Shown: positions 2,820 through 25,545 of the stretch, piece by piece
Layout: each line of letters starts with the position of its first letter
How positions within the stretch are numbered: position 1 is the first letter of the stretch
Assembly (NCBI GenBank): GCA_002269645.1
Contig: NIVC01004955.1
Span: forward strand, 1 to 30,189
Length of the DNA stretch: 30,189 nt
Reading direction: 5' to 3'
From: Macrostomum lignano
Lineage: Eukaryota
Program-made: the position numbers and the translations under genes
Notes under the pieces: model-generated
Seen by the model: only the letters and a program-made list of their open reading frames with translations
Database searches by the model: none
Told to the model about the DNA's origin: nothing

Positions 2820-4697
2820 TCAATTCTCGCGCCAAGTGTAAAAGGCGGGACTTTCACCGGCTCTCCTGATGGCCTCGCGAAAGTCTGCTCTCTCATCGGG
2901 TCGAGTCTCCCAGAGCGCCAAGACGACTCGAAACCAGCACTCCGCAGCGACCATGTGCCGTTCCCAATTAGTTTGCTGCCATGCCTGAGCCCTGGGACTC
3001 AGAACCAGAGCCTCAGCTCTGCCGCGAACAATGGCAGCGGCCAGCCACAGCAGCAGCGAGTGGTCTGCGACACTGCAACGACTTTGTAAAATTTCTGTGG
3101 CTAGAGCCTGCAAAATGTTTTTGTATTCGCTATCGGATGCGCCACCTCTGCAGATTTTATTCAGCGCAGCTTTTCTTACTTCATCGGCGTTCCAGTCCAA
3201 GAGCTTTCTAACAGCTTCGTCCTGATAGCGGTGATACTGTTTGCTCAGCCTCTTCAAAACGATTCGTCTTCCACAGAGGCTCTCATGTTGATGCCGGGTC
3301 TGCCTCAGCTTCAGATAGGTCAACCCGCTCTTTGCTTCTGGCTCAATATCATCACGTGTCTCCATTGGAGGGTCTTCGCCCCAGATGTCGTGCGTTCTTT
3401 GCGGATCATCGTCCTCACTGTAGATTCTGCCATGTCTGTGTAACTTAGGAACAAGAAATCTTAAATTATTTGTGCTCGTACTACCTGCAATTTTGTGCAA
3501 CCGGTGAGTGACTTCAGTGACTACTGGTTCGATTGAGAGCCTGGTTTGAAGCCGTGATTGTTTAATTTCAACTGTAAATACAGAGAATGTCTGCAGCGGT
3601 ACCTCAAAGTGAGATATTGTATAAGTTTTCGGCCAAGACGTCTCTCCTGGTGGTGCGAAGTGAAGCAGCGCTTCAAATTGAAAGTCTCTCAGATCGAACG
3701 TTTTCAAAAACTTTGATCCTTTGGTCATTTCCACAACTACTGCAGCCACAAAAATCCTTAGACTTTCATTTTTCTTACATTTAAACTGCTCCTTCCAAGG
3801 GCCCAGTTCGTGACAGTTTCCTCGCAAGTCAAAGCTGTCAACGTTTTTTATTTCGCATTTGAAGTGCAACTCACAATGAGCGATTCTAAACACTTGGGGT
3901 TCAGCTTGACGGTCCAGCTTTATCAAGTACGTTTGCGTTGGGTTGACTCCGCCATCAACAGACAGATTGATGTCGTATGAGCCTGAGAAAGCTTCCGCAT
4001 CCTCTTTCATAACTTTAACACTCAGTGGCTCTCCAGTAGGCAGTCTCATGAAGCCATTATAATTGACCATTTGCAACTTTTCAATAGTCAGTGTCCAGAC
4101 CTGAGTGTCTCCGTGATCTTGCTTAGCATTTTCGCATGCCTTGCAATCTGTACAGAGCAGACGAGACTTTTTGAATGTCCTGCTTTCTAAAGAACTGCTG
4201 CCATTCAGTTCGGAATAATTAGCTTCGATATAAAACTTGCTGGATACCGACTTTGGAGTTTGAATTTCAAATATAAGGCAGAGTGGTATCATTGGTATGA
4301 CTCGGAAGTCATTCTTTGAAATATCTGAGAAAATGACAAACTCCGCCTTCTTATCTGCAACAAAATGAGGCACAAAGCGGAGCTCTTCGTTGAACTGTAC
4401 TGGATAGTCTGAGCTCTCTTCGATGGTTTTCCTCAGACTCATTGTCAGTATGTCCTCTGTGTCTGCTTTTTTCAGCTCGCCATTGTCCGTCACTGCAAGG
4501 TTTTTGAAGTTTTCATCGGTGTCAGCATCAACTCGGAGGTACCATACTTGCTCAGCTGGTCTGCTTCCGCGCAGCTCTTTCTTCATCAGTTCGCACTGCT
4601 TGGTCTCTCCGTCAGGCCCCCATTTGTAGCAAAAAATTATTTGATTAAAGTCTTCGCTGTGCTTTGTACGGATGACGATGTGCAACACTGTGTTCAT
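2820..4697 (-). CDS. 625-aa protein with a predicted beta-rich N-terminal/central region (one CBM20-like motif) and a C-terminal helical death-domain-like module
   Basis: Uninterrupted 1.9-kb ORF with ordinary protein composition. The ATG is preceded by an in-frame TAA and by cag| at 4706/4705. The C-terminus aligns by eye to the neighbouring ORF. Confidence 0.85.
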   Translation of the reverse strand: MNTVLHIVIRTKHSEDFNQIIFCYKWGPDGETKQCELMKKELRGSRPAEQVWYLRVDADTDENFKNLAVTDNGELKKADTEDILTMSLRKTIEESSDYPVQFNEELRFVPHFVADKKAEFVIFSDISKNDFRVIPMIPLCLIFEIQTPKSVSSKFYIEANYSELNGSSSLESRTFKKSRLLCTDCKACENAKQDHGDTQVWTLTIEKLQMVNYNGFMRLPTGEPLSVKVMKEDAEAFSGSYDINLSVDGGVNPTQTYLIKLDRQAEPQVFRIAHCELHFKCEIKNVDSFDLRGNCHELGPWKEQFKCKKNESLRIFVAAVVVEMTKGSKFLKTFDLRDFQFEALLHFAPPGETSWPKTYTISHFEVPLQTFSVFTVEIKQSRLQTRLSIEPVVTEVTHRLHKIAGSTSTNNLRFLVPKLHRHGRIYSEDDDPQRTHDIWGEDPPMETRDDIEPEAKSGLTYLKLRQTRHQHESLCGRRIVLKRLSKQYHRYQDEAVRKLLDWNADEVRKAALNKICRGGASDSEYKNILQALATEILQSRCSVADHSLLLWLAAAIVRGRAEALVLSPRAQAWQQTNWERHMVAAECWFRVVLALWETRPDERADFREAIRRAGESPAFYTWREN

Positions 4698-5782
4698 TTA
4701 AACACCTGTCTGGTTGCTGAGCCGGTTCAGAAATTTTATGAGTAGAAAAACCATGCAGATTATGTTAAAGTCTGTAATTAATAAGATAAACAGCCTTTCT
4801 ATTGCCATTCTTCCAGATAACGCTTCTTACTATATAAGAAAAAATTGCCTTTCTAATAGGATACGATACGCATGCTATCAAAGTTCACCAATTACATTTA
4901 GGTCTGTTAATAATGAAGGTAACCAGCCCTTGTTATAGCCATTATTCTAGACCATGCTCGTTACTACTGGTTCTATAAGATAAGATTGCTCGCCTAATAG
5001 AATATGACTTGGGTATGCTATCAATTAAAAGTTTACGAATTTCTTTTAAGCTCCCTACATTTTGTTTGCACCTTGAACTCTCTTGAGTCAAATCTATCCT
5101 ACTCAGCCTCAACAAGTATAGGGAAATAAGCAGCAATTTAAGGAATGACGATTTCAACGGACGCGTTATAAATTCCGATTAAAAGCGTGGAATTACTTTA
5201 GAAGTACATGTATCTACAAGAAAACCGATTGTAGATGATATACGGATATGGATATCCGACTTAGATTCAAAAATCAAAGGCAAAAAACGCTTGTACGATC
5301 ACGTATGTTTACATATAAAATCCCCCATTCTTAGTGGCGCATTCAGAAATTTGTTGAGGGTGGTGTGTATTCTGGAGGGTAAGGACCCAAAGAGAGGGAT
5401 TGGTTCTGTATTTTAGCGAGGATGCGCTTGGTGCCCTCTCATTTTTTCATGTCTCGACTCTCCGCCCAAAGGCCGCCCTCGCCATCATCCCCCTGGGTGG
5501 TGTAGCATGCGCATGCAGTGAGGAAGTTCGGAGCACATACCCATGCGCACACAATAAACGGGAAGTCTGTTCTGTCAGGCAATAAATACACAGGCACAAG
5601 CATAGCCACCTTCTACTAAGGCACTACGAGCGTAAGGCACTAACACTATCTCGTAGCCAGAGTTTCTCACTACAGGTGGGTTAATTTACAAGCATTAATG
5701 TACAAAAATTCAATCAATGATGAACAATGATGATATGCAACACTTTATCGTTAACTTAAAGGTTGAGAGCAAACCAGAAGGC

Positions 5783-6746
5783 CTAACTGTCTGTCTGGCT
5801 AACGCAGGCCCCGAACTTCTCAGCCTCGTCCTCGGGCTCAGTCCCGACAGCCCTGAGGCGGCTCCAGACGGCCACCATGAAGCAGAACCAGGCCTCCGCA
5901 ACCGGGCAGTGGTCTCGAGGTTGATCTCCGTTCTCTTGCAGGTCTCGCAGGCAACCCTGAACAATTTCTGCGGAACTTCTGTTCAGACTTCTTAGAGTCT
6001 CTTCAGCCAGCATCCACTCGCCGTCGGCAATGCTGATTGCCAATTCCATCAGCTCTTCACAATATTCGTCCTCAGAGAGATCTTCCTGAAGCTTCTGGAC
6101 ATTTTTCATCGCTTCAGGTCGTTGATAGTCATCTGTACTAAAGATTACATTGTTCGTAAGAGTTTGGAGCACAGATTTTCCCTCACTTTTCCAATTACTG
6201 GCCCCTGGTGCAGCCTCTGGCAGCAAATATGGAGCAAAGATGCGCCTGACGCTTTCGTGACTGGTCAGTTTAGCTGGCAGGTTGCGGATGCTGCAGAGTG
6301 AGTACTTAAAGTCTGTGAGCACTGTTTCTGTGTTGAACAATGGGTTGAATCGATTTTTGGCTGTCGTAGCCGACTGGAGTGATTCATCTGGTTCTTGATC
6401 GGATGTTCCTTGTTGATCGGATGTTGCTTGTTGATCGGTTGTTGCTTGTTGATCGGTTGTTGCTTGTCGATCGGTTGTTGCTTGTTGATCGGTTGTTGCT
6501 TGTTGATCGGTTGTTGCTTGTTGATCCGTTGTTGATTGTTGATCGGTTGTTGCTTCTTGATAGAAAGAAGTAGAAATGTACTTGTTATACCTGGATCGAT
6601 GAATTTTCGGTCTTGGTCTTGGTCTTGGTCTTGGCACTCTCTCTTCAACCAAATCTAATGATTGCTCTGAAGAAATTTTAGGCTGACTTGATGAAAACGA
6701 TTGTCGTTTACGTCGGAGTTTAGAGTTGCCTGAGTTACCCATTGAC
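5783..6746 (-). CDS. Main exon of a ~320-370 aa protein with a low-complexity N-terminus (RP and TTDQQA repeats) and a C-terminal death-domain-like module
   Basis: 319-aa ORF from ATG 6742. Strong acceptor cttttttaaatgcag|GTCA-ATG at 6747/6746. C-terminal LMELAISIADGEWMLAEETL...AEAWFCFMVAVW. Confidence 0.8.
6405..6550 (-). repeat. Coding 18-bp tandem repeat encoding (TTDQQA)n, about 8-9 copies
   Basis: ttgatcggttgttgcttg units on the + strand, in frame within the 5783-6742 ORF. Confidence 0.9.
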
Positions 6747-7233
6747 CTGCATTTAAAAAAGCAGTTGGCAATTATAGTTAGGCCTTATTTTTTCCTTTAC
6801 CGATTCATCTTTTCAGAAATTTATCCTATGAGTTAAGTATTTGCTTTGAGCTTGAGGAGTCAAATTGACTCGTAAACTTTTTTTTCATTATTAATGTGCT
6901 CACTAGTGAAGGCTCATTAATTTTCTAACACATAAAAAACTAGCAAAATGGAACTCTGATGCAAAAAATCGTAAGATTTAGCGGATGTCATTCTGAAACT
7001 ACGTAAAGTTTTATAAATACGAGCGTACATGACTTCATTCTTTCAAAAACTTATATTCGAACTTTATCATCTTGTTTAACTATTGTATACCAGTAGTGCA
7101 GTCCCGCTTCAGTTTTGAGACAATGAAATCAATTAGTAAATAAATATCAATAAATAAGAAGCAAAATTGCCTTTTAGAAAAAGAATAAGCGGCATGAGAG
7201 ATGAGATGAACGACAAAAACTTCATAGCTATAC

Positions 7234-9356: not shown

Positions 9357-9874
<518 letters not shown>

Positions 9875-11477: not shown

Positions 11478-11669
11478 GGCTTTTTAGCAGTTTAGCGCTT
11501 GTCTTTTCTTTTCTCAATTAGCAAATAGTGCTTATCCTTTCAAGCATAAACTCTTAGTGCGTATTGTCATTGGCCTAGTTATATTCTGGTCTGCAGGAGC
11601 TCAATATGCCAATCCCTGACGGCCTTAGACCCCTCTTTATTAGAATCAAACCTTTAATAAATACTCATA

Positions 11670-13095
11670 CAGCCAGCATCCCCCAGACAGCAAGCATCCC
11701 CCAGACAGCAAGCAATCCCCCAGACAGCAAGCATCCTCCAGACAGCAAGCATCCCCTAGACAGCAAGCGATCCCCCAGACAGCAAGCAATCCCCCAGACA
11801 GCAAGCATCCCCCAGACAGCAAGCAATCCCCCAGACAGCAAGCATCCTCCAGACAGCAAGCATCCCCTAGACAGCAAGCGATCCCCCAGACAGCAAGCAT
11901 CCCCCAGAAAGCATCAACCCATAGATATCAAGCAATCCCCCAGATCTAGACAGCAAGCAATCCCCCTGATCTAGACAGCAAGCAATCCCCCAGATCTAGA
12001 CAGCAAGCAATCCCCCTGATCTAGACAGCAAGCAATCCCCCAGATCTAGACAGCAAGCAATCCCCCTGATCTAGACAGCAAGCAATCCCCCAGATCTAGA
12101 CAGCAAGCAATCCCCCTGATCTAGACAGCAAGCAATCCCCAAGACAGCAAGCAATCCCCCAGACAGCAAGCAATGCCCTAGACAGCAAGCAATCCCCAAG
12201 ACAGCAAGCAATCCCCCAGATCTAGACAGCAAGCAATCCCCAGATCTAGACAGCAAGCAATCCCCAGATCTAGACAGCAAGCAATCCCAAGACAGCAAGC
12301 AATCCCCCAGATCTAGACAGCAAGCATTCCCCAGACAGTAAGCATCCCCCAGACAGCAAGCATCCTCCAGACAGCAAGCATCCCCCAGACAGCAAGCATT
12401 CCTCAGACAGCAAGCATCCTCCAGACAGCAAGCATCCCCCAGACAGCAAGCATTCCCCAGATAGCAAGCATCCCCCAGACAGCAAGCATCCCCCAGACAG
12501 CAAGCATCCTCCAGACAGCAAGCATCCCCCAGACAGCAAGCATTCCTCAGACAGCAAGCATCCTCCAGACAGCAAGCATCCCCCAGACAGCAAGCATTCC
12601 CCAGATAGCAAGCATCCCCCAGACAGCAAGCATCCCCCAGACAGCAAGCATTCCCCAGACAGCAAGCATCCCCAGACAGCAAGCATTCCTCAGACAGCAA
12701 GCATCCCCCAGACAGCAAGCATTCCCCAGACAGCAAGCATCCCCCAGACAGCAAGCATTCCCCAAACAGCAAGCATCCCCCAGACAGCAAGCATTCCTCA
12801 GACAGCAAGCATCCCCCAGACAGCAAGCATCCCCCAGACAGCAAGCATTCCCCAGATAGCAAGCATCCCCCAGACAGCAAGCATCCCCCAGACAGCAAGC
12901 ATTCCCAGACAGCAAGCATCCCCCAGACAGCAAGCATTCCTCAGACAGCAAGCATCCCCCAGACAGCAAGCATTCCCCAGACAGCAAGCATCCCCCAGAC
13001 AGCAAGCATTCCCCAGACAGCAAGCATCCCCCAGACAGCAAGCATTCCCCAAACAGCAAGCATCCCCCAGACAGCAAGCATCCTTCAGCAGGCAT
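11670..13095. repeat. 18/19-bp minisatellite (CAGACAGCAAGCATCCCC)n with a 24/25-bp AGATCT-containing sub-block
   Basis: Directly visible. The AGATCTAGACAGCAAGCAATCCCCC variant zone spans ~11937-12320. Confidence 0.97.
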
Positions 13096-13368: not shown

Positions 13369-13870
13369 GAAATTTGTTCACCAGCAGTTTAGCAATTTGT
13401 TCACCAGCAGTTTAGCAATTTGTTCACCAGCAGTTTAGCAATGCTTCACCAGCAGTTTAGCAATGCTTCACCAGCAGTTTAGCAATGCTTCACCAGCAGT
13501 TTAGCAATGCTTCACCAGCAGTTTAGCAATGCTTCACCAGCAGTTTAGCAATGCTTCACCAGCAGTTTAGCAATGCTTCACCAGCAGTTTAGCAATGCTT
13601 CACCAGCAGTTTAGCAATGCTTCACCAGCAGTTTAGCAATGCTTCACCAGCAGTTTAGCAATGCTTCACCAGCAGTTTAGCAATGCTTCACCAGCAGTTT
13701 AGCAATGCTTCACCAGCAGTTTAGCAATGCTTCACCAGCAGTTTAGCAATGCTTCACCAGCAGTTTAGCAAGGCTTCACCAGCAGTTTAGCAATGCTTCA
13801 CCAGCAGTTTAGCAATGCTTCACCAGCAGTTTAGCAATGCTTCACCAGCAGTTTAGCAATGCTTCACCAG
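13369..13870. repeat. 22-bp minisatellite (CACCAGCAGTTTAGCAATGCTT)n, ~22 copies
   Basis: Period 22 (13447, 13469, 13491...). The first copies are 23-bp variants. Confidence 0.97.
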
Positions 13871-16554: not shown

Positions 16555-18080
16555 TCCGTAGTCCACGGTTCATAGACTGTATTATCCGTAGTCTACGGTT
16601 CATAGACTGTATTATCCGTAGTCTACGGTTCATAGACTATAGTATCAGTAGTCTACGGCTCATAGACTATAGTATCCGTACTCTATGGTTCATAGACTAT
16701 AGTATCCGTAGTCTACGGTTCATAGACTGTATTATCCGTAGTCTACGGTTCATAGACTATAGTATCCGTAGTCTACGGTTCATAGACTATAGTATCAGTA
16801 GTCTACGGCTCATAGACTATAGTATCCGTAGTCTATGGTTCATAGACTATTGCATCCGTAGTCTACGGTTCATAGACTGTATTATCCGTAGTCTACGGTT
16901 CATAGACTATAGTATCCGTAGTCTACGGTTCATAGACTATAGTATCAGTAGTCTACGGCTCATAGACTATAGTATCCGTAGTCTATGGTTCATAGACTAT
17001 TGCATCCGTAGTCTACGGTTCATAGACTGTATTATCCGTAGTCTACGGTTCATAGACTATAGTATCCGTAGTCTACGGCTCATAGACTATAGTATCCGTA
17101 GTCTACGGTTCATAGACTATAGTATCAGTAGTCTACGGCTCATAGACTATAGTATCCGTAGTCTATGGTTCATAGACTATTGCATCCGTAGTCTACGGTT
17201 CATAGACTGTATTATCCGTAGTCTACGGTTCATAGACTATAGTATCCGTAGTCTACGGTTCATAGACTATAGTATCAGTAGTCTACGGCTCATAGACTAT
17301 AGTATCCGTAGTCTATGGTTCATATACTATTGCATCCGTAGTCTACGGTTCATAGACTGTATTATCCGTAGTCTACGGTTCATAGACTATAGTATCCGTA
17401 GTCTACGGCTCATAGACTATAGTATCCGTAGTCTACGGTTCATAGACTATAGTATCAGTAGTCTACGGCTCATAGACTATAGTATCCGTAGTCTACGGTT
17501 CATAGACTATAGTATTCGTAGTCTACGGCTCATAGACTATAGTATCCGTAGTCTATGGTTCATAGACTATAGTATCCGTAGTCTACGGTTCATAGTCTGT
17601 ATTATCCGTACTCTACGGTTCATAGACTATAGTATCCGTAGTCTACGGTTCATAGACTATAGTATCCGTAGTCTACGGTTCATAGACTATAGTATCCGTA
17701 GTCTACGGTTCATAGACTGTATTATCCGTAGTCTATGGTTCATAGACTATAGGATCCGTAGTCTATGGTTCATAGACTATAGTATCCGTAGTCTATGGTT
17801 CATAGACTATAGTATCCGTAGTCTATGGTTCATAGACTATAGTATCCGTAGTCTATGGTTCATAGACTATAGTATCCGTAGTCTATGGTTCATAGACTAT
17901 AGTATCCGTAGTCTATGGTTCATAGACTATAGTATCCGTAGTCTATGGTTCATAGACTATAGTATCCGTAGTCTATGGTTCATAGACTATAGTATCCGTA
18001 GTCTATGGTTCATAGACTATTGCATCCGTAGTCTACGGTTCATAGACTATTGCATCCGCAGTCTATGGTTGATAGATTAT
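16555..18080. repeat. 30-bp satellite (TCCGTAGTCTACGGTTCATAGACTATAGTA)n, ~51 units with higher-order repeats
   Basis: Exactly two units per 60-nt line; variant units recur in a regular order. Confidence 0.98.
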
Positions 18081-18695
18081 AGGCAACTAAACATAAATCA
18101 GTGCTAATTCAGTTCGACATATACACTCATATAGTACTACATTATTTGATTCTTACAGCTGAATTGAATTCAGTCCAAATCAATTTTCATTGACTAAAGC
18201 ATTTAGTAAAAAGATTTTTTTCTAATTTTTCACTAAATTGTGAATTTGAGTAGGTGTTTTCATAGAATTGGAAACTTGACTGGCCATTCAAAGCTACCAA
18301 GTTGCTATACGTATTTGATCTATGACGCTTAATTTTCCTGTGAACTGCCCATTGGGCCAGCATGTACGAGCGTACAAGTAGCAGCAGCTATTCATGTCCC
18401 TGCATCCCCCCGTGAGAAATTCATTTGGCTATACGCCCCTATTGGTTCTCATGCAGTTGCAGAAGAGGTGAAAAATATTCGGTTCTTGATTGTTAGAAAT
18501 GATTTGTACCGAACCGTGGTTTGGCAGAAGGCTTATATAATATTAGTATCCTTGCACGCCCTCAAATTTCGACATTGACTAGCTGCTGCAAAGTTCTGTA
18601 ACAATGTTACATTAAAACTTTTCTTTGTGAATAATCAACAGTTTTAAATTCAACAGACTTATGCTATAACAATATATGGCCTTCAATTTTTTTAG

Positions 18696-20970: not shown

Positions 20971-22435
20971 AGTTGCCGTATTCCGAAACGGCAGAGCTTC
21001 GGTCCTTAAGAACGAGCAGGGTAGCGAAATCACACCCGCCTATGTGGCATTCACACGGGATGGAAAACGGCTCATTGGAGACGAGGCGAAGAGTCAGCTC
21101 ACCTCGAATCCGGAGAACACGGTGTTCTCTTTATTCCCAATTCTTGGCGGCCAAAGCTTTGATGAGGAAGAGGTCCAGAATCACACGGAGGCCGTGCCTT
21201 ACAAAATATTTAGTAGCAACAAGAAAGCCAAAATCGACGTGAAAGTTGGCGACCGCACTGAGTCATTTTCTACGGAAGAAATTGTTGCCGTGCTGCTCAG
21301 CAAGATGAAGGAAATTGCTGAAAAATACCTGAACGAGCCGGTCACCAGAGCGGTGATCAGTTTGGCCAGCTGCGCCACCTATTCCCAGCGGAGGGCGATC
21401 AAAGATTCTGGTAAAATCTCCGGCTTCCAAGAGGTTCACGTAGTCAATTCCCACATGACCACTGCCCTGGCTTACCTGCTGCTAGTCGAAGTCTTCAGTC
21501 CGAGGCGCGTGCTGGTCATTGACGTCGGCGCCAGGTCGCTCAGCGTCGCAGTTTTATCAGTTGGCAACGGAGCAATCCGAACCCTCGCTCAGGATTGCTC
21601 AACTAAAATTGGTGGCGAAATATTCCAGCAGCGAGTCATTCACTACATGGAGATGCTCTACGAGAAAAAGAAGGGCAGAGGCTTGGCGGAGCGGCTCCGT
21701 AAGAGTGCCAACGCCCAGCAGAAGCTTCGTAGAGAAGTTGAAAAAGCAATTCGAACTTTGTCTTTTAGTGAGCTGGCGGATGTTCAGACTGAGTCACTTC
21801 TGGGCGAGGACTTCTCTGAGGTTTTGATGCAGTCCAGGTTTGAACAGCTGAATATGGATCTGTTCCAAAGCGTGGCAGATCTTGCTGAGACCGTGCTCAA
21901 CCGAGCAGGCTCGCGAGCCTCAAAACTCGATGACGTGTTGCTAATCGGCGGCTCCAGTAAAATTCCAATGTTGCGTCAATTCGTGGCAAACGCCATCCTA
22001 GCAGTTGGCCAGCCCAGCGACATGATGGATCCGGACACTTCGTCAGTTGTTGGCGCGGCAATCTGGGCCGGGAGCCTCGCCAACAGAGCATTCGACGACG
22101 GGACTATTGGAGCCTTCAAGCCCGGCCTGCTTGCATCAGGAAATTTCGCCCTTGTCGACAGCACGTCACACTGCCTGGGCTACTTATCCAAGGGATATTA
22201 TTTTAGTACCGTTATTCCTCGAAATGAGCCGCTGCCAGCCAAGGGGGAAGTGAAGGTATCGTTGCCGAATATCTACGACGAGGAAGTCAGTAAGGCAACT
22301 ATACTGGTGTTCGAAGGCGAGCAGCGCGTGGCTGAAATGAAGAACTTCGTTGATTCGGTTCAGTTGTACTTTAAGAAGACTTTCTATCCGGCACTTTGGA
22401 GTAACTTTACTGTCAATCACGAGCACACGATAACG
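20971..22435 (+). CDS. Exon 2 of the divergent BiP-derived Hsp70 (nucleotide-binding domain and SBD-beta)
   Basis: Acceptor gatttcag|A restores the exon-1 phase. Recognisable motifs: TPAYVAFTRDGKRLIGDEAKSQLTSNPENTVF, RFEQLNMDLF, LIGGSSKIP, VIPRN, VFEGE. Donor ACG|gttggt, phase 0. Confidence 0.9.
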
Positions 22436-23240
22436 GTTGGTAACCATCATTGATTATATATTGAGACGATTTTTAGCGTTTGATAGAAATTCTGGCTCTT
22501 CATTGCTTCAAATACTCAAGATATTACATCAAAACGTCTCAGTTGGGTCGTGCTGGAATCCCAAAATCTGCGCCCATTGATTCCAAAAACGGCGGTAGCT
22601 GACCCTCCCTCTCCCTCAAACAGGGAGGCCTTTTACCACGGCCCATTTTGACATCTCAAAATGGCTTTCCTGGACATCCAAAACCTATAGTGAATGTTGG
22701 CCACCCTGGAATCCTCAAAGCTGACGTCTCTCAGCCCCTGAGGAAATTATAACCTTATTTGACATCTTCTGCATGTAAAATACGACAACCCCTTGACACC
22801 CAGTTGTGGCGCCCTTGAACTGCTGAAAGTCTGTCATAGACGTCGCTGTAATATAAGTATTTTTTACGTTACGACCGATGATAACAACGTTACATACGTC
22901 GGCCGAACGTCGGTTTAATGTAAAAGTAAACATCTATCAGCGACGTCGATAGACGTCAGGAACGTCGACGGCGGACGTCGTCGACGTCGGATTGCCGTAC
23001 AGGTGCATGTACATGTACATCATATATGCTGCAGTGCCCCCAATTGCAAAACAGTGGCGCGGACCTTGAGACTCAAAGGTGCAGTGCTCTTTGACTCGAA
23101 AGTACAGGGCGCCATCTATTTTATAAATGCCACAGATCGAAGCTCATTTTTACAGAAGTTCTGTAAACACTCTGCAGTGTATAATAGAGCTCAACGAAAT
23201 CGCGTTCATTTCATACCGTATTACGTTACACCATCTGCAG

Positions 23241-24646: not shown

Positions 24647-25545
24647 CAGGGGTTGGCAAACTCCGGAATGAGGGCCAAATGTGGCCCGCAAAGCATCTCC
24701 ATCCAGCCCTTGGGTCCTTTGAATCTTCACAATAGCAATCCGGCCTCTCATAGTCTCCTCTAATCTCCTCTCCTCTCATCTCCTCACCTATCTCCTCTCC
24801 TCTCCTCTCTCCTTTCCTCTCCTCTCCTCACCTCTCTCCTCTCCTTTCTTATCCTCTCCTCTCATCTCCTCACCTCTCTCCTCTCCTTTCTTATCCTCTC
24901 CTCTCATCTCCTCAACTATCTCCTCTCCTCTCCTCTCCTCTCCTCTCTCCTCTCCTCTCCTCTCCTCTCTCCTCTCATCTCATCTCCTCACCTCTCCTCA
25001 CCTCTCTCCTCTCCTCTCATCTCCTCTCCTTTCCTATCCTATCCGCTCATCTCCTCACCTCTCTCCTCTCCTCTCATCTCACCTCTCTCCTCTCCTCTCC
25101 TCTCCTCTCCTCTCTCCTTTCCTCTCATCTCCTCACCTATCTCCTCAATTCTCTCTTCTTCTCTCATCTCCTCACCTCTCTCCTCTCCTCTCATCTCCCG
25201 TTTCCTCTTCATTCTCTTCTCCCTTCCCTCCTCTCTCCTCTACTTATCTCCTCTCTCATTCATTTCAACTCTCCTCTCCTCATTCATCTCCCCCTCTCCT
25301 CTCTCTTCTCCTAGTTTATCTCTCTTCTCATCTACTCTCTTCTCCTTTATTCCTTCGCCTTTCCATTCTCCTGCTCTCGTACATTTCTGTTCTCTATTCC
25401 CCATCCTCTCTCCCTATAGCCCGCAGTCATCAGGGACTCCTGGACGCGCATTTTGCTTAGGGGGCTCAGCGAAGCGGACCCATGCAGAAGGGCAGTCGCG
25501 CTGTTCTCAATCTGGCCCTTGGAGTAAAAAGCTTGCTGACCCCTG
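24647..25545. mobile_element. hAT/Charlie-like MITE nested in the previous element
   Basis: TIRs CAGGGGTTGGCAAACT / AGCTTGCTGACCCCTG. Flanks TAATAAAA / CACTAAAA match at 6 of 8 positions, with a central TA. Confidence 0.75.
24746..25410. repeat. Polypyrimidine (CTCCT/CT)n low-complexity tract
   Basis: Directly visible inside the MITE. Confidence 0.95.

Follow-up and report, generated by a model that had tools for sequence, protein, structure and literature searches.

What do two genes that lie side by side in the flatworm Macrostomum lignano have in common when their proteins begin in unrelated ways and end in similar helical stretches? The genes, here called A and B, lie on contig NIVC01004955.1 of assembly GCA_002269645.1, the whole of which (30,189 bp) was analyzed and is referred to as the window. 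Both are encoded on the minus strand, with B upstream of A (Table 1), and public annotation calls both as single-exon genes whose lengths exactly match the open reading frames (ORFs) described here, gene A being identical to the called protein P0001. An initial annotation of the locus had seen a death-domain-like module in the two C-termini and a linked sensor and adaptor pair in the two genes. The reading that we reach, and to which we assign a probability of about 0.7, is that these are adjacent same-strand single-exon genes, that A and B both belong to one lineage-restricted domain family, and that B is a domain-only, shortened relative of A.

Homology of the two C-terminal modules

The peptide matches between A and B that had been picked out by eye are all present at the positions where they had been placed. 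Residues 521-536 of A (SDSEYKNILQALATEI) align with residues 223-238 of B (SEDEYCEELMELAISI), AAIVRG (A 554-559) aligns with AEIVQG (B 258-263), and AECWFRVVLALW (A 585-596) aligns with AEAWFCFMVAVW (B 283-294). Both proteins end soon after the module, as had been remarked, with 29 amino acids (aa) in A and 25 aa in B beyond the last common W, and the N-termini are indeed unrelated, that of B carrying a (QQATTD)n tract.

By pairwise BLASTP the similarity between A and B was marginal (27/96 identities, 21 gaps, E 0.013), and other copies of the locus were therefore collected for profile comparisons by tblastn and ORF extraction. The window and the contigs L001, L002, L003 and L009 are five contigs that represent four distinct loci, L009 being an identical duplicate contig that carries the same B-A pair. 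Aligned by hhalign, the profiles of the four copies each of A and B gave E 2.7e-5 and a probability of 74% over 102 columns. The C-terminal parts alone scored 37.1; the controls were 300 column shuffles (13.0 +/- 2.4, maximum 22.4), 300 shuffles in blocks of 8 columns (maximum 22.0) and reversal of the alignment (16.2). At this four-copy depth the A-B similarity is real, yet modest.

Additional family members (P0006-P0010, described below) made the relationship firm. An enlarged domain profile built from A and P0006-P0010 matched the four B sequences in hhalign with a probability of 96.9% (E 1.4e-10), the four non-A members alone matched them at 96.6% (E 6.3e-10), and addition of a fifth B-type sequence, P0012, raised the match of the enlarged domain to 97.3% (E 1.9e-11), with a score of 80.5 versus a shuffle null of 13.6 +/- 2.4 (maximum 23.0). 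When the six-frame ORFs of nine loci were searched by plain HMMER with a model free of B sequences, the four B ORFs were all recovered, at E ~1e-8. Furthermore, in separate AlphaFold2 (AF2) models of A and B the helices occupy matching positions of the sequence alignment.

The pairwise result, with its E of 0.013 and 22% gaps, speaks for a chance resemblance of two amphipathic helical tails without homology. This explanation is refuted by the profile scores, which lie far beyond the column-shuffle, block-shuffle and reversal nulls (37.1 vs a maximum of 22.4; 80.5 vs a maximum of 23.0), by the third-party family members that connect A and B, and by a second, separate segment (the first segment of the domain, described below) that also matches in collinear order. 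Taken together, these results uphold the claim of a common C-terminal module in the two tandem genes: the profile homology is significant and far above the shuffle nulls, and the C-terminal modules of A and B are homologous and collinear.

Macrostomum domain family and the conserved core of B

An exhaustive HMMER search of 1.84 billion representative proteins with the A profile resulted in the identification of five more proteins at E 2.3e-20 to 1.6e-13, namely P0006 (1,525 aa), P0007 (649 aa), P0008 (1,348 aa), P0009 (4,007 aa) and P0010 (529 aa). P0006, P0007, P0008 and P0010 are M. lignano proteins; P0009 is a UniParc entry whose matched region is closely like P0006 and which, judged by its sequence, is likely a merged gene model. 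All five match only the last ~215 positions of the A profile, and in the four intact models (P0006, P0007, P0008 and P0010) the domain lies at the extreme C-terminus. Comparison of A with P0006 and P0007 by hhalign gave a probability of 99%.

The domain so delimited is helical, spans ~250-300 aa and stands C-terminally behind variable bodies. Its collinear motifs are LVP, HDIWG, LTY, RL..YH, EY..L..LA, SAAIVRGR.EA, W..H...A..WF....A.W.R, F..xI and P.FY.W, and A has every one of them, including F..AIR. In the HMMER searches the domain family was detected only in Macrostomum, and the close relatives of A and B among 5.8 billion proteins are solely M. lignano hypothetical proteins, including the paralogous copies of A, P0002 (89% identical) and P0003 (59%). 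The domain is absent from Pfam and, if our reading is right, previously unannotated; it is carried by at least six protein clusters, none of them with a Pfam match for it.

A word-indexed protein search with a 12-sequence domain alignment found only P0004 and the B-type protein P0012; this search scored the 8,000 candidates that shared most words, and known family members were missed by it. P0005 was rejected as a relative, as it matched B solely via the low-complexity QQATTD repeat. P0012 is a diverged, intact 226-aa B-type protein without a QQATTD tract, and its source is the 956-bp Logan contig SRR28338165_1566941 (L004), probably from another Macrostomum species or strain. As a predicted product, P0012 shows that small B-type proteins occur on their own. 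Additionally, the last ~55 residues of the domain recur (E 1.6e-21) in a 66-aa ORF ~150 bp downstream of the P0007 gene (L005 12105-12302, plus strand), a fragment that is probably left over from a partial duplication.

The relation of B to this domain extends beyond the C-terminal helices. In a MAFFT alignment and in more permissive hhalign comparisons, B aa 138-175 (TETVLTDFKYSLCSIRNLPAKLTSHESVRRIFAPYLLP) stands opposite the first segment of the domain, and this stretch alone matched P0006, P0007, P0008 and P0010 with a probability of 82.5% (hhalign E 9.8e-6, score 31.6 vs a shuffle maximum of 17.6). B retains the first segment together with EY..L..LA, SAEIV(R/Q)G and H...AEAWF....VW, i.e. 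the last three helices, and is without the central HDIWG-LTY-YH segment (~70 residues) and without the terminal P.FY.W. Since the first segment of B matches on its own and in collinear order, the conserved core of B is the domain minus its central segment and tail, that is, a shortened, collinear copy.

The shortened domain is the only conserved part of B. Its N-terminus is not conserved among loci, and the copy number of (QQATTD)n ranges from zero (the tract is absent from L003) to dozens (longest in L002). In the window, B begins MGNSGNSKLRRKRQ, in which a PROSITE-type N-myristoylation pattern precedes a basic cluster; residues 1-14 of B are not common to the L001, L002 and L003 copies, where gene models or ORFs begin differently. 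At 6740-6760 the B ATG is preceded by ttttttaaatgcag followed directly by gtcaATG, which resembles a 3' splice acceptor.

The N-terminal bodies differ among family members in length and sequence. Pfam CBM_20 (PF00686) was matched above its cut-off of 23.3 bits by P0007 (37.8 bits) and P0006 (24.0 bits), and several units of the form 'GNCxELGN' can be seen to recur in P0006, P0007, P0008 and P0010. The predicted CBM20 starch- or glycogen-binding domains of two paralogues are the family's sole functional hint. In their architecture these two proteins, with an N-terminal CBM_20 and a different C-terminal domain, are like the animal CBM20 proteins laforin, STBD1/genethonin-1 and GPCPD1; laforin and GPCPD1 join a carbohydrate-binding beta-sandwich to a different C-terminal domain. 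Unlike in laforin and GPCPD1, the C-terminal domain of the Macrostomum family is not a phosphatase or GDPD domain, and it has no match among known families.

The body of A had no match in Pfam (CBM_20 was not found even at E 10) or in PDB sequence searches. A holds one unit motif of this kind, RGNCHELGPW (aa 292-301), and, unlike in the animal CBM20 proteins, its resemblance to CBM20 is not significant, the CBM20-like stretch A 268-326 giving hhalign E values of 0.009-0.16 against the paralogues. A local hidden Markov model (HMM) of the CBM20-like units scored A 274-325 (window 3723-3878) at 7.7-8.8 bits, with a shuffle maximum of 2.8, and left the L002 and L003 copies unscored. Calx-beta was rejected as an assignment for A 55-127 (window 4317-4535), for which hhalign gave a probability of only 7.5%; the same stretch matched a brittle-star Calx-beta protein at a summed HMMER E of 1.5e-9. 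These two stretches are the body's only hints of a beta-sandwich, and both are weak.

One functional picture that could be drawn from these bodies is that the ~300-aa HDIWG/AAIVRGR domain is a Macrostomum-specific module tethered to glycogen or another glycan via CBM20-like bodies, and that B is a linked domain-only subunit, 'dead' in catalysis or in function, that heterodimerises with A through the three-helix core and so tunes its activity. The module might be an enzyme or a ligand-binding domain, because its H, D, W, R and E positions are invariant. We regard this picture as a whole as improbable.

Table 1. Positions of genes A and B and of their parts in the window
Feature	Positions	Strand	Description
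Gene A	2820..4697	minus	625-aa single-exon coding sequence; stop 2820-2822; ~375-aa N-terminal body, then C-terminal helical domain
C-terminal domain of A (aa 376-625)	2823..3572	minus	whole span of A 376-625 matched by a local HMM
HDIWG motif (A aa 436-440)	3378..3392	minus	invariant in 8/8 full-length family members aligned; absent from B
A core common to B (aa 517-600)	2898..3149	minus	hhalign; predicted helices 522-537, 543-565, 568-598 (AF2)
Spacer, B stop to A ATG	4698..5782	minus	1,085 bp
Gene B	5783..6742	minus	319-aa ORF; variable N-terminus, (QQATTD)n tract, ~165-187-aa conserved core
B core common to A (aa 219-297)	5852..6088	minus	hhalign; predicted helices 224-239, 247-270, 280-298 (AF2)
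B first-segment counterpart (aa 138-175, TETVLTDFKYSLCSIRNLPAKLTSHESVRRIFAPYLLP)	6218..6331	minus	matches domain start RDSVL..F...L...LPDLP....VRD..AK.LVP
18-bp tandem repeat	6395..6561	minus	9.3 copies; encodes (QQATTD)n of B

The death-domain question

The proposal that A and B are a death-fold sensor and adaptor pair, assembling homotypically through a diverged death domain, CARD or PYD in innate immunity or cell death, draws on a helical C-terminal module of ~80-100 aa common to two linked genes with unrelated N-termini. Such anatomy is typical of death-fold adaptors (DD, DED, CARD, PYD), and the locus is like those pairs in that an all-helical C-terminal module occurs in linked proteins that are otherwise unrelated, so that homotypic pairing would be plausible. 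The death-domain identity of the module is, however, supported neither by Pfam nor by PDB profiles, the AF2 helix count or Foldseek.

No Pfam-A match to Death (PF00531), DED (PF01335), CARD (PF00619) or PYRIN (PF02758) was obtained by hmmscan at E up to 10 for A, B, the modules and 12 family members, a result read with the caution that HMMER filters may hide very weak Pfam matches. For the C-terminal domain Pfam returned only noise (Actin, SDH5_plant, RelA_AH_RIS, Imm30 etc.), far below cut-offs. Likewise, sequence and profile searches of PDB with the A domain, the 12-sequence alignment, full-length A and P0007 yielded no death-fold chain; they returned designed coiled coils and HA2 at E > 0.02, or nothing.

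AF2 was run separately on A 440-625 and B 125-319, and both models are all-helical. Over the 77 shared columns they have three long helices (16, 23-24 and 19-31 residues) plus one or two short C-terminal helices. The death fold consists of six short antiparallel helices in a Greek-key bundle of ~80-100 residues, and inspection of both C-termini with AlphaFold and Foldseek revealed no death fold in either model. Foldseek against PDB gave nothing at E <= 0.001 (best E 0.39 for A and 0.11 for B), and the top 50 matches of each model contained no DD, DED, CARD or PYD; the top matches were generic helical bundles, including the McpS ligand-binding domain, prenyl synthases, ferritin/Dps and designed bundles. 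As the models are of low confidence and their alignments shallow, the helix count is indicative only, and this low confidence is the remaining point in favor of a death fold.

Two further observations run against it. The module is the last third of a ~300-aa domain and no autonomous unit, and the partner domains found in the Macrostomum family are CBM20; NACHT, TIR, kinase and caspase domains are absent from the family, which sets it apart from death-fold systems. By the tests made, including the modeled structures, a death-domain assignment is not supported; a very divergent death fold is formally possible, and we consider the death-fold pair very improbable. None of the results points to a part in immune signalling, or away from one.

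Paired loci and the relation between A and B

The pairing is kept at the paralogous loci, with B followed by A on the same strand in the window and in L001, L002, L003 and L009. The window, L002, L003 and L009 also share, downstream, the 3' end of a gene that runs convergently and encodes a BTAF1/Mot1-like SNF2 helicase, and the paired loci are therefore copies of one ancestral segment. With regard to this helicase gene, its 3' end appears at the end of the contig (window 1-963, plus strand, with an ORF at 387-737), where the sequence is 96% identical to L002 sequence that adjoins an SNF2/Helicase_C/DUF3535/HEAT (BTAF1/Mot1-like) gene at its annotated 3' end; the same gene also follows A on the duplicate contig NIVC01002373.1.

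To describe the divergence of the copies, we compared two locus subgroups, one made up of the window and L001, the other of L002 and L003. Between them the B core has a synonymous divergence (dS) of 0.77-0.97 and a ratio of nonsynonymous to synonymous divergence (dN/dS) of 0.28-0.41, and the A body has a dS of ~0.8 and a dN/dS of ~0.4 (0.25-0.54 across copies). A and B are thus constrained coding sequences under purifying selection and of similar age. The last ~200 codons of A have a dS of 0.10-0.16 in every pair, within and between subgroups. This 3' tract, which runs from near aa 400-425 to just past the stop (window 2820-3430 plus ~100 nt of 3' flank), shows 86-97% nucleotide identity and a reticulate best-partner pattern, with the closest partner switching along the tract, and the first ~400 codons of A show a 20-45% nucleotide difference between the locus subgroups. 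Such a mosaic suggests that interlocus gene conversion, or recombination, has acted on A only in its 3' half, which encodes the domain.

A history consistent with our reading would begin with a tandem duplication that gave rise to the pair. This duplication would be old, since B lies equally far from A and from the other family members. B would then have shed the central stretch from HDIWG to YH as well as the terminal P.FY.W; its low-complexity N-terminus evolves fast. Its three kept helices might pack on the equivalent surface of A or of other members, and B would in that case serve as a domain-only partner or competitor. A homotypic interaction between A and B would be a reasonable expectation; that B acts, by analogy, as a partner or competitor of A or its relatives is a tentative proposal, which we would not expect to hold.

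The analogy is with the CARD-only and PYD-only proteins (COPs/POPs), Id-type HLH proteins and plant microProteins, in which, as here, a short protein keeps part of the domain of a multi-domain relative, in this case an adjacent one. Domain-only anatomy is a known source of dominant-negative or titrating partners. Unlike in those systems, the domain is unrelated to CARD, PYD, HLH or the homeodomain-leucine-zipper, and, unlike typical microProteins, B is larger, at 319 aa, and has a long low-complexity N-terminus.

The main rival is that A and B are independent paralogues, neighbours left by an old tandem duplication without functional coupling, B having a separate role or heading for loss. We give this explanation a little less than an even chance. 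B matches A alone at E 2.1e-6 and the non-A members at 9.9e-11 and is thus equally distant from both; other family members have no B-type neighbour; every paired locus derives from one locus; the N-terminus and repeat number of B are unstable; and the 3' half of A is homogenised between loci while B is not, so that the two genes evolve out of step. On the other side, the B core is under purifying selection (dN/dS 0.28-0.41), and adjacency and orientation have survived a dS of ~0.8-0.9 at every copy. Neither the constraint on B nor the kept adjacency proves coupling.

The adjacency could also reflect a two-gene B-A operon, resolved by spliced-leader (SL) trans-splicing and giving the two proteins in fixed proportion. 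The two genes share a strand, and the spacers between them are 558-1,105 bp long (unadjusted for repeats), the values other than that of the window being 558 bp in L001, 1,105 bp in L002 and 839 bp in L003, and ~200 bp 5' of the A ATG are conserved with L001. In M. lignano about 15% of the genes have been placed in operons, which mostly comprise two genes, by the criteria of a common strand, a repeat-adjusted spacer below the threshold of 1 kb and SL trans-splicing of the downstream gene (PMC8629364). The typical operon spacer in this species is, however, ~100 bp (PMC8629364), and no [T/C]TNCAG acceptor was obvious by eye just 5' of the A ATG; we consider an operon unlikely.

Several observations weigh against our own reading of a domain-only relative beside its full-length neighbour. 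None of P0006, P0007, P0008 or P0010 has a B-type gene within 10 kb (0/4), and the B-A pairing is specific to the A lineage. The kept adjacency is weak evidence of functional coupling, consistent with linkage and not an independent proof, because the paired loci duplicate one ancestral locus in a genome that is neopolyploid (PMC10733133). The C-terminal domain of A has a dN/dS of 0.7-0.86 among copies, with few substitutions, and does not appear to be under strong recent constraint. The AF2 models come from alignments 2-3 sequences deep and have mean predicted local distance difference test (pLDDT) values of 61.5 (A) and 53.5 (B), and the A model leaves out aa 376-439 (~65 residues, with most of the HDIWG motif). 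Finally, literature searches found no papers on the Mlig locus tags or on CBM20 in M. lignano.

Elsewhere in the window, a 469-aa Hsp70-family ORF at 21044-22453 on the plus strand matches positions 38-447 of the 599 in the Pfam HSP70 profile (255 bits) and may be either a single exon from a longer gene or a copy that has been truncated. Large tandem arrays occur at 9357-9874, 11669-13083, 13377-13870, 16555-18082 and 24754-25312; the array types are (TCTA)n in ~130 copies, an 18-bp unit x74, a 22-bp unit x22 (98% matches), a 30-bp unit x51 and a CT-rich array. About 1/6 of the contig is satellite-like, and there is a strong GC skew between 9 and 14 kb.

Because the death-domain claim fails, the locus offers no new view of innate-immune or death-fold signalling in flatworms. 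Flatworm genomes commonly hold orphan families restricted to a lineage and partial paralogues in tandem, and the wider significance is for this reason modest unless a function emerges. We regard the result as a real but ordinary find, an orphan domain family confined to one lineage and accompanied by a truncated paralogue in tandem, of interest mainly to flatworm genomics, in which a by-eye match at a BLASTP E of 0.013 became firm homology via intermediate family members. If our reading is true, it would give a regeneration and stem-cell model flatworm a previously unannotated protein domain family, and the natural pair of a full-length and a truncated gene would be a convenient handle on the role of the domain.

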